From: Macrostomum lignano
Lineage: Eukaryota
Direction: 5' to 3'
DNA: 64,000 nucleotides
Assembly (NCBI GenBank): GCA_002269645.1
Contig: NIVC01000181.1
Coordinates: 733,114-797,113, forward strand
Part shown: one piece after another, positions 35,986 to 38,900 of the stretch
How the letters are laid out: every line of letters begins with the position of its first letter
How positions within the stretch are numbered: the stretch's first letter is position 1
Notes under the pieces: model-generated
Told to the model about the DNA's origin: nothing
Database searches by the model: none
Seen by the model: only the letters and a program-made list of their open reading frames with translations
Position numbers and translations under genes: made by a program

Positions 35986-38900
35986 TCAGCTTGATCGGCT
36001 CAGTACGAGCTACTTGTCTGTCTGTCTGCCTGTCTGTCTGTCGTCTGTCTGTTTGTCTGTCTATCTGTCTGTGTCTGTCTGTCTGTCTGTCTGTCTGTCT
36101 GTCTGTCTGTCGTCTGTCTGTTTGTCTGTCTATCTGTCTGTGTCTGTCTGTCTGTCTGTCTGTCTGTCTGTCTGTCTGTCTGTCTGTCTGTCTGTCTGTC
36201 TGTCTGTCTGTCTGTCTGTCTGTCTGTCTGTCTGTCTGTCTGTCTTAGTGTGTGTCTGTCTGTCTGTCTGTCTGTCTGTCTGTCTGTCTGTCTGTCTGTC
36301 TGTCTGTCTACAGTCTGTCTTTCTTTCTTAAGCCCCATTCTCTCCTAAGCTCCATAGACTCACCTCATGCTGCCTGTCCTTATCGTTAATTGCCCATCTG
36401 CGTCGGCAAGCCTACAGAAATGTTAGAAATATTAGTAAACCAGTTTGAATAAGTCTCTCAAGATCAAATGATTTCGTGTTTGAGAGGGTGGAAAACTTTC
36501 GGATTATCAAGCCGCCTCACTCACCCCGCACAGAACCGTAATCCCCAAAACCATTACGCCAAGAAAGTAGACCGCAGTGAATGCCACTATGGCGAATTTC
36601 TCAATTTTACGCGAATCGTATTGACCGGTAGTGGAATGCCAAACAATCAGCAGCACGAGGAACAGGAGATTGTAAAGTATTGCCTTGTCCTGAAAATGAT
36701 GTTTTTTTAAAAAAGGAGAGGCCTTTACTCATACCCAACAAAATAATAAATAGGGTATTCGAGGTATTAGTGTGTATGCAAGCTAGTGTACTTTTAGCCG
36801 GGAGAAGCAACTCGTCAAAACAGGTCAACCGGCAGCATTAAAAATCCAGGGAACATCGATAGAACGAAAGAACATCTGGAGATCTTGTAACATCGAGGGA
36901 GCTACACAAATCTTCTAGACTTACCAATAAAGTGAGGTATGCGATCCTTGGAATGCTATTATTAACCACAAACTTGTATGTAATGGTGGTTAGCAGCAGG
37001 ATGAAAGAGAGCTGCAAGCGACTTTGCAATTTTTTTTGATCCAAGCAAAACGCGCACATGGCCAGTGCGCACAGAATGAACGACACGAGCCAGATGTTCA
37101 CCATGTAGAACACTGACTTTCTAGTCGCTCTGGTTGTAAAGCGCAGCGCCGATCTCTTTCTTGGCCCAATATGGCTGTCCGAATGGATCAACGCCTTGGT
37201 CGCGTCCACGTGTGTGTGCAGATGCCACTCCTGGGCGTCCATAAATGTGTTGGTGAGTACGCGACAAGGACGTTCGGACATTTCATGCAGATCGATTGCT
37301 GAGTTTGGCAGATTGGAGCACACTGTTACCGTTAGATCCTGCAGGTTGTTTTGGGGCATAGAGCTGTTTGATGACGGAGCTCAGTACGTTTAATTCTATC
37401 AAATTCTGTCGTACAGAAGATTTCTATCAAAATTTCTATCAAAAGGAATATACTTCGTTATCCATTGAACTCATTGTATAACGTTGGGAGTAGCAAGGTG
37501 TCCAGCAAGCCATTCCATAATCTTAACGAACCTGCGTGTCGAAAGGAAAGTGCGACAGTTCCATTTGCTCGTGGAATTTGCCTCGAACGCTGTGCTTCTC
37601 TTGTACGAAAGTGTCTCCAGATTCTACTCGAATCACTTCGACTTCTTTTTGGTGCTTGAGGTCGCCAATGCAGTTGTCCACGTAGAGATCTGGGTGCCAG
37701 AGACTCGAAGTGTCAACCGTGGTGACTGCTTTGTCGAGAGCCGGCTCTCGCCATCGCACCTCCAAATATACGGAAGCCTCGAAGCACTCGTGGACCGTGT
37801 CGATGTCACCAATCTTTGTGAATACAATTCGAACCTCCACTAGTCGCTGTTTTTTGGGCGAGAAGGAAAATCGCATCGCTCTTTTTTTAGTTAATTTTTA
37901 ATCAGTGAGGAGTGTACTTATACAAGAATAATCCGATAATTTTAAGGACGCATTACGGACTTGACAGATGCATTCATAGTATTGAATCAACACATACGAG
38001 CGTAGTTGTAGGTTCTTTGATCCCGCCATTAAAAGAGGCCATTTTAGCGGGATCACACAAAATTTAAATCAGTTTTCGTCGCTTTGACACATCTCTGACA
38101 GATAGGCACCAAATAGATTACCTTTTCCCCAGCCTGCTGACCCACTACCGAAGGCGGCGATGCGTCATTGACACATCTCTGACAGCTAGGCACTGTAAAG
38201 GCTCAATTAATTGCGAATGGAGAAAAAGGTTAGGCGTCCACTTAGCCTTGCGTGCTATTATATATTGTGATCGATCGATATGCAATACGATGTACATAAT
38301 GCTAGAAGGCCCAAAGCTCAAGCCGATTGGCTGCAGAGGAGAGAAGAACTGAATGGTGTGGGGGTTTGAATATTGCAAGGGCCAAAGGGTTAAGTTGGCT
38401 GGCGAGAGAGAGAGTACATTGAACAGCGGGGCTGACAAGGGCGCGCAGCGCACGGGGACGGCTCACATCCTTCCCCGAGCGGATTAAAACAGGAATTAAA
38501 AACGTATTGGATGGCAGCTGTCAGAGCGCGAGCGTTTGCGGAAAGCAGACTGATGGATAGACATAAAATCGGTATTGGGTTATTGTAATATTTTTTCACG
38601 GAATAAAACAATTGGGCGAAAGAAAATTATACAAGAGATAAAAAAAATTGCATTAGCCGCATGGCGGATCATCCCCCCCCCACTACAAAAGCGCGATCAA
38701 CCAGTAGCAGTTAAAAAAAGATGATGAGTAAATAAACGCTGTCAAAATGAGTAAAGGCAATGCAAAATTCACTTGTCACAGTATAAGTCAAGTCAGTCAA
38801 TCATTGAAAAAAATTTCAGCGAACCGATCAGATATTCAGATTCCTTGGTCGACCTTTGCACGCGCGTGGATGCGCGCGCTGGGCGATCGCCTCCGGTGGT

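Follow-up and report, generated by a model that had tools for sequence, protein, structure and literature searches.

The pLGICs (pentameric ligand-gated ion channels) of animals include a clade of Pro-loop receptors without the Cys-loop disulfide (Jaiteh, Taly & Henin 2016, PMC4795631), members of which have been described from schistosomes (Johnson et al. 2023, PMC9874803). Planarian homologues with RNA interference phenotypes have been mentioned (Ross 2018, as cited in PMC9874803). In the literature searched we found no electrophysiology of any metazoan member of this Cys-less clade and nothing on the pLGICs of the flatworm Macrostomum lignano specifically, and neither PMC4795631 nor PMC9874803 describes recent tandem duplicates with the pore as their sole difference. 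The DNA analyzed here, which we call the window and to which all coordinates refer, is the terminal 64 kb of M. lignano contig NIVC01000181.1 (assembly GCA_002269645.1). It carries two Cys-less pLGIC genes in tandem whose products, within the folded channel, differ only at positions -2', 2' and 6' of the second transmembrane helix (M2). We put at about 0.55 the probability that both copies are working channel subunits and that copy 2 is a functional pore variant. The signature of pore-directed divergence is suggestive, and selection is unproven.

Gene models were built with the M. lignano protein P0001 (GenBank PAA49613.1) as guide, and each junction was inspected (Table 1). Both genes lie on the minus strand and have six exons, all in phase 0, with GT/AG at every junction and an intact open reading frame (ORF). 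The proteins are 400 residues long from MGNYSAA, or 393 from the annotated start MPANSS (43345 in copy 1). The translation of copy 2 equals PAA49613.1 exactly from Met8. Copy 1 is annotated as a partial protein (P0039), and two UniProt proteins from an older assembly, P0040 and P0041, carry the M2 and the C-terminal tail of copy 1. A three-exon model of 313 residues, with an additional R2Q difference between the copies, was dropped; judged by P0001, that codon falls in intron 1. In both copies M and L stand where the Cys-loop cysteines would be, which bears out the first-pass annotation of this DNA in its description of two Cys-less genes in tandem; at the second of the two positions, 145 of 147 family rows have L, I or V.

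Over 1203 nucleotides of coding sequence there are 12 differences between the copies. Five of the 12 are substitutions within 34 bp of M2, where the first-pass annotation had seen five in about 40 bp, four of them non-synonymous over three codons. From copy 1 to copy 2 they are CAA>TCA (two nucleotides, Q271S), CAG>AAG (Q275K), ATC>ACC (I279T) and the synonymous CTA>TTA (L282); the resulting S/K/T tract of copy 2 can be searched for as TTGTCAAGTCGCTTGAAGCTCTCTTTCACCCTGCTGTTA. The M2 codons changed are exactly -2', 2', 6' and 9', and all five changes are at codon position 1 or 2, none at the third. Isolated synonymous changes occur at K21, R92 and L115. The last exon has four changes in 17 bp (35878-35862 in copy 1, 51537-51521 in copy 2), namely S393G, N394T, L398Q and the synonymous R397, all within the last eight codons. 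The earlier statement that the proteins differ only at three M2 positions and elsewhere synonymously is therefore right for exons 1-5, which encode the whole folded channel (the core), and wrong for the full protein, given the three replacements in the last exon. There is no replacement in M1, M3, M4, the remainder of M2 or, as had also been claimed, the ligand-binding domain; apart from the three in M2, all changes in exons 1-5 (K21, R92, L115, L282) are synonymous. The tail is disordered (a coil of low confidence in the AlphaFold model) and unconserved, and the changes clustered in it could be neutral or could mean a further difference between the copies, in a C-terminal motif. Over about 600 bp upstream of the start codon, the copies differ at only four sites.

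The family assignment comes from several methods. The Pfam domain Neur_chan_LBD (PF02931) is found with E=1.1e-9 and 38.5 bits (cutoff 26). An AlphaFold monomer (predicted local distance difference test, pLDDT, 81; predicted template modelling score, pTM, 0.74) has beta strands within residues 55-232 and helices at 234-257, 263-287, 296-318 and 324-386, corresponding to M1-M4, and Foldseek matches it at E~1e-20 and template modelling (TM) scores of 0.70-0.79 to GLIC, GlyR, GABA-A, GluCl and ELIC chains. Both copies have the Pro-loop motif (F/Y-P-x-D) as FPFDTQ, which hardly varies among homologues. By domain, fold and Pro-loop, both copies belong to the pLGIC superfamily, with pentamer formation and ligand-gated conduction predicted. 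The closest matches are Cys-less proteins of molluscs and annelids, at 36-41% identity, and best matches and features together fit a putative membership in the metazoan Cys-less Pro-loop clade.

The positions of the three replacements in the pore depend on the M2 register. Residues 271, 275 and 279 lie in the first turns of the modelled M2 helix. The best solved relative is ELIC (E=7.6e-14), to whose segment sERLQTSFTLMLT HMMER aligns M2 residue for residue; in PDB 6hjx the ELIC mutation L238C is named as a 7' pore mutant, and alignment with a canonical nicotinic subunit of the GEK type gives this register too. From these three lines the arginine is 0', placing Q271S, Q275K and I279T at -2', 2' and 6', in agreement with the register first proposed (R as 0', L as 9'). 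Residues -2', -1' and 0' read Q-S-R in copy 1 and S-S-R in copy 2, neither of them the PAR or the GEK/GER signature; the family consensus is Q/E-N-R. Charge selectivity is determined at -2' and -1' (Keramidas 2000; Galzi 1992; both as cited in PMC9874803). With neither a PAR nor a GEK signature, the ion selectivity of the two proteins cannot be read from the sequence, and that the 2' lysine ring of copy 2 favours anions is a guess.

M2 is the most conserved transmembrane segment of the family, with a mean entropy of 0.92 compared with 1.36-2.29 for the others, yet it contains all of the core replacements. In a set of 142 representatives of the wider family, 48% have Q at 2', 13% have S, 8% R and 2% K; at 6', 73% have T, 12% L and 11% I. 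The first-pass annotation had set a hydrophobic 6' constriction in copy 1 against the pore of copy 2; such a constriction is not special to copy 1, I or L at 6' being common in the family and T the majority residue. A basic residue at 2' occurs in 14 of the 142, of which 12 have T at 6' and 12 have E at -2'. As triples, Q/Q/T is found 24 times and Q/Q/I eight times, and S/K/T occurs in copy 2 alone, although each of its three states is found naturally elsewhere in the family. Many of the representatives are 600-1260 residues long (P0043, P0045, P0050, P0064, P0128 and others), with several hundred residues preceding the channel domain, and P0133 and P0169 each have five matched stretches.

Sequencing error is unlikely to account for either version of M2, each of which turns up again in another, independent contig or assembly. 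Over 57817-50115 (7.7 kb including copy 2), contigs L002 and L003 match the window at 100% identity, and they differ from it further upstream, so that three contigs with differences elsewhere agree exactly in the S/K/T gene region; in proteins of the older, independent assembly, Q/Q/I appears together with its matching tail. With respect to the consensus errors that the first-pass annotation had envisaged, both M2 versions have thus been assembled independently, and the two genes are joined in a single contig. The corresponding alternative, that alleles or homeologues were misjoined in tandem or that the M2 differences are polishing errors, draws on the long-read origin of the assembly, the highly repetitive genome, and the fact that only the window contig spans both genes, L002 and L003 ending before the copy 1 gene. 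Moreover, TTGCAAAGT>TTGTCAAGT can be expressed as two compensating indels (CAA>TCA as a +T/-A pair). Against it, three of the five changes are plain substitutions, every change keeps the reading frame, and both L002 and L003 run from copy 2 into unit-1-specific sequence (100% and 99.96% identity, respectively). We regard an artefact as highly improbable. L002 and L003 were also considered as possible alleles; with 100% identity throughout the gene, they say nothing about polymorphism.

Extensive recent duplication is a feature of M. lignano, and self-BLAST of the window identified a tandem segmental duplication with a unit of about 15 kb, each unit containing one minus-strand channel gene and a Ty3/gypsy-like element upstream of the gene. 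Divergence between the units is patchy. Self-comparison gave 96.8-98.2% identity for 34442-38467 against 50115-53960, 97.9% for 42800-46911 against 53684-57817, and 93% for 47172-49251 against 57815-59891, and on a finer scale there are stretches of about 7% divergence far upstream and then of 0.7-1.1%, 0.3%, 2.9% and 0.2%. No difference occurs across the 1296 bp from 45053 to 43747, nor in the 659 bp directly upstream of the M2 cluster. Non-coding divergence is 2.9% from M2 to about 35600 and 0.2% past it. An apparent 5-nt block substitution at 46653-46649 adjoins a 10-bp indel and probably results from misalignment. The pattern looks like a gene-conversion mosaic. In the older-assembly protein P0041, a copy 2 state (TTG at site 43489/54368) occurs alongside the M2 and tail of copy 1, and these mixed states, together with kilobase-scale patches ranging from about 7% to 0%, suggest ongoing exchange between the copies. 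By tblastn, the window holds no third channel copy or fragment; the additional matches are only ~85-bp repeats of the end of exon 1.

Intron 1 gives the order of events. It contains a full-length long terminal repeat (LTR) retroelement in copy 1 and a solo LTR in copy 2, at the same site and with the same GGCAC target-site duplication, which indicates that the element was inserted first, that the duplication followed and that LTR-LTR recombination in copy 2 came last. The two LTRs of the copy 1 element are one substitution and two indels apart in 277 bp. This is less than 2.9%, so that the 3' gene block beginning at M2 is either older than it should be or imported.

The direction of the M2 changes was read from a second M. 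lignano gene, on L004, whose product P0003 is 56% identical to the pair. It matches copy 1 at all five differing nucleotides, making Q/Q/I ancestral and S/K/T derived. Conversion of copy 1 by this gene was considered as the reason for the match and rejected; silent differences from P0003 are interspersed among the five sites and are common to both copies. Templated or quasi-palindromic mutation found no support, since no k-mer of at least 10 covering two derived positions is found elsewhere in the window or in L004, where matches were at chance level.

How unusual the M2 cluster is depends on the null model. If substitutions are spread uniformly over the 7.3 kb of aligned unit, the probability of some 36-bp window with at least five of them is 0.009. 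The M2 cluster lies at the 5' edge of the 2.9% block, however, and this value is superseded by that for the block itself (about 1.4 kb), in which some 34-bp window with at least five substitutions is expected with P=0.16, which is not significant. The M2 window has four non-synonymous changes (26 sites) and one synonymous change, and the core outside it has none (about 838 non-synonymous sites) and three synonymous changes. Three independent replacements would fall within nine codons with P=0.0017 in the core and 0.016-0.019 in the block, and for exact i, i+4, i+8 spacing the values are P=5e-5 in the core and 6e-4 in the block. The replacements thus appear to be placed non-randomly, at P about 0.002 to 0.02.

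Several points speak against a pore variant shaped by selection. Besides the local-block result, Fisher's test of replacement and silent changes in M2 and the rest of the core gives p=0.07. All of the placement tests are post hoc and assume independent mutations; with a single-event origin they would collapse, though no template or donor for such an event was found. The C-terminal tail has a second tight cluster, mostly non-synonymous, which means that clusters arise here without obvious pore logic. Finally, -2', 2' and 6' are among the more variable M2 positions of the family and hence also the most tolerant, which fits tuning of the pore and mere tolerance of change alike.

The cluster could also have a mutational or recombinational origin without adaptive meaning. 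It might be the edge of an old block that was never homogenized, a short patch from an unsampled close paralogue or homeologue, or the product of a single multi-nucleotide repair event, with the pore positions reflecting coincidence and tolerance. The mosaic of divergence between the units, the position of the M2 changes as the first differences of the 2.9% block after 659 identical bp, the P=0.16 for such clustering in that block, the second cluster in the tail, the exchange suggested by P0041 and the family-wide variability of -2' and 6' are all in keeping with such an origin. On the other hand, a donor differing at three residues should also differ at third codon positions, and none of the five changes is at one. 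No template for two or more derived positions was found in the window or at the locus of the 56% paralogue, which is itself excluded as donor, and the M. lignano proteins yielded no more than two groups of paralogues, the other having Q/Q/I. The other 281 coding bp of the block are unchanged where about eight changes would be expected at the local neutral rate of 2.9%, from which we conclude that the exons of the block are under constraint. Overall, we consider a non-adaptive origin rather unlikely.

It is also conceivable that one copy is being lost under relaxed constraint, either copy 2, with a lysine ring that conducts poorly or is dominant-negative but tolerated, or copy 1, impaired by the 4.9-kb retroelement in its intron 1. 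The duplication is young and redundancy is expected; Q occupies 2' in 27 of 30 close family members, making Q to K a radical change; a full LTR element does sit in intron 1 of copy 1; and by our estimate the non-synonymous and synonymous counts in the coding part of the block are near the neutral prediction. Both ORFs and all splice sites are nevertheless intact, and relaxed constraint predicts scattered replacements, of which there are none at the ~838 non-synonymous sites of the core outside M2. In 12 other representatives, T at 6' accompanies a K or R at 2', a combination that is therefore compatible with a protein maintained in evolution. Loss of a copy seems to us decidedly improbable.

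The sequence of events we favor, in which both genes encode subunits of a channel of the spiralian/flatworm Pro-loop clade and copy 2 became a functional pore variant, would be as follows. A segment of about 15 kb, with the LTR element already in intron 1, would have been duplicated in tandem, and gene conversion since then would have kept most of the two genes nearly identical. In the copy 2 lineage, Q was replaced by S at -2', Q by K at 2' and I by T at 6', on the pore-facing stripe of M2, most likely because selection favored a changed pore or opposed conversion tracts by which the change would be lost. In the narrow half of its pore, copy 2 would then have rings of lysine (2') and of the polar threonine (6') in place of the glutamine and isoleucine of copy 1. 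In pLGICs generally, 2' and 6' influence conductance and block, and the changed rings should alter conductance, charge selectivity or block. We infer that both copies are expressed, that selection lies behind the changes, that function has shifted in a given direction and that the copies co-assemble; their identical subunit interfaces and near-identical proximal upstream regions make heteromers of copy 1 and copy 2 a plausible prediction.

Signal peptides seem to be missing throughout the family: a hydrophobic stretch ahead of the beta-sandwich is found in none of 28 close homologues and in only 2 of 104 wider representatives with complete N-termini, although the same hydrophobic-stretch test detected the outgroups with signal peptides. 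The N-terminal extensions in the family consist of polar sequence, 89 residues long at the median and 911 at most. A basic stretch after M4, C-[KR][KR]R...KD[RK]EHK, is common to the 28 close homologues, and in the AlphaFold model of P0001 it continues the M4 helix. Taken together with the missing disulfide, the absence of signal peptides, the polar extensions and the basic post-M4 stretch suggest that the ligand-binding domain may face the cytosol. We found no mention of a signal-peptide deficit or inverted topology in the Cys-less clade in the searchable literature. A further proposal, which we think unlikely, is that the pair is a selection-fixed natural pore swap in an intracellularly gated pentameric channel, with a cytosolic domain or in an organelle membrane, and thus two pore versions of one intracellular sensor. 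The family-wide absence of signal peptides, if borne out, would be the more important result, pointing to a pLGIC with a cytosolic sensing domain.

Other features were noted at the 5' end of the genes. Both M. lignano paralogue groups begin with MGN..AA (MGNYSAA, at 43366-43346 and 54245-54225, and MGNSQAA), which fits the PROSITE N-myristoylation pattern. In the P0041 model an upstream non-coding exon (43658-43491 / 54537-54370) is joined to an acceptor at 43351; splicing of this type would remove the MGNYSAA ATG and leave translation to begin at MPANSS (43345). The hydrophobic stretch in the 5' extension of P0041 was considered as a signal peptide and rejected, exon 43658-43491 having no in-frame ATG after an upstream stop and being untranslated region. 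Exon 1's 3' end and splice donor (..QQAGEK|GTAATCTA) recur together as copies of ~85-90 bp on either side of the LTR in both units (38084-38193, 43081-43228, 53577-53686 and 53960-54107) and provide extra decoy donor sites in intron 1.

The window as a whole is eukaryotic in character, with spliced genes, LTR retroelements and abundant mini- and microsatellites. Long (GTCT)n/(TGTC)n arrays, at 236-875, 34438-34602, 36015-36328, 49934-50275 and 51674-51818, flank the repeat units and also sit inside them, including intron 5 of both genes, and could have mediated the unequal exchange behind the duplication. Dense, unrelated minisatellite arrays (periods of 18-54 bp, up to 67 copies each) are present at 2061-20989 and 62356-63050. 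They occupy much of the first 21 kb of the window, where there is no channel-related sequence.

Table 1. Positions of the channel genes, their differences and the duplicated segment in the window
Feature	Position	Strand	Details
Copy 1, Cys-less pLGIC gene (pore Q/Q/I)	35852..43366	-	exons 43366-43184, 37846-37532, 37338-36925, 36689-36525, 36411-36364, 35929-35852 (stop included)
Copy 2, Cys-less pLGIC gene (pore S/K/T)	51511..54245	-	exons 54245-54063, 53339-53025, 52831-52418, 52178-52014, 51900-51853, 51588-51511
M2 difference cluster, copy 1	36993..37026	-	codons 271 CAA Q (-2'), 275 CAG Q (2'), 279 ATC I (6'), 282 CTA L (9'); 5/5 nucleotides match the 56% paralogue
M2 difference cluster, copy 2	52486..52519	-	TCA S (-2'), AAG K (2'), ACC T (6'), TTA L (9', synonymous); derived
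C-terminal tail difference cluster	copy 1 35861..35878, copy 2 51520-51537	-	S393, N394, R397, L398 in copy 1; G, T, R, Q in copy 2
High-divergence block between units	35600..37026		~1.4 kb, 2.9% in non-coding DNA; starts at the M2 cluster, preceded by 659 bp without difference
Full-length Ty3/gypsy-type LTR retroelement, intron 1 of copy 1	38191..43081	-	LTRs 38191-38467 and 42800-43081; TG..CA termini; 5-bp target-site duplication GGCAC; RVT_1, RNase H, rve
Solo LTR, intron 1 of copy 2	53684..53960	-	same site as the copy 1 element; same GGCAC duplication
Tandem repeat unit 1	34442..49251		channel gene; gypsy-like element upstream at ~43964-47685; (GTCT)n microsatellites; self-BLAST
Tandem repeat unit 2	50115..59891		compared with unit 1: gene 96.8-98.2%, upstream element 97.9%, far upstream 93%; self-BLAST

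What is new here is a further member of a known, uncharacterised channel family. As in the published Cys-less clade, the M. lignano proteins lack both Cys-loop cysteines and keep the FPFD motif; the schistosome members, however, are reported to have E at -2' (PMC9874803), where the M. lignano pair has Q or S. Like ELIC of Erwinia/Dickeya (PDB 2vl0, 6hjx), the flatworm proteins have no Cys-loop disulfide and a very short M3-M4 loop, and the two M2 helices are nearly superimposable, the ELIC residues being Q (2'), T (6') and L (9'). ELIC differs in being bacterial and in having a secretion signal and a ligand-binding domain outside the cell, whereas the flatworm proteins have a 60-residue polar N-terminal extension, no signal peptide, no acidic residue at -1' and an M4 that runs into a basic helix of about 25 residues.

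The nearest documented analogue of one binding domain with alternative pores is the nicotinic acetylcholine receptor (nAChR) alpha6 subunit of insects, in which exons 8a, 8b and 8c provide alternative parts of the second transmembrane segment to a single ligand-binding domain (PMC6393475; PMC1919356). There the alternatives arise by alternative splicing of ancient duplicated exons within one gene, whereas the M. lignano pair results from a recent whole-gene duplication in another class of channel. Subunit variants that differ at 2' or 6', with altered conductance and blocker sensitivity, are familiar from GlyR alpha and beta, from GABA rho1 and rho2 and from the A2'S/G variants of RDL. Those variants also diverge widely outside M2, in contrast to the M. 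lignano pair, which is otherwise identical across the folded channel. The locus illustrates how tandem duplicates homogenized by conversion can be left with a small, functionally loaded patch that is different. With identical ligand-binding domains and interfaces, and a folded channel that differs at -2', 2' and 6' only, the pair amounts to a natural triple point-mutant and offers a natural test of what these positions do in the Cys-less clade, without the need to guess at mutations.

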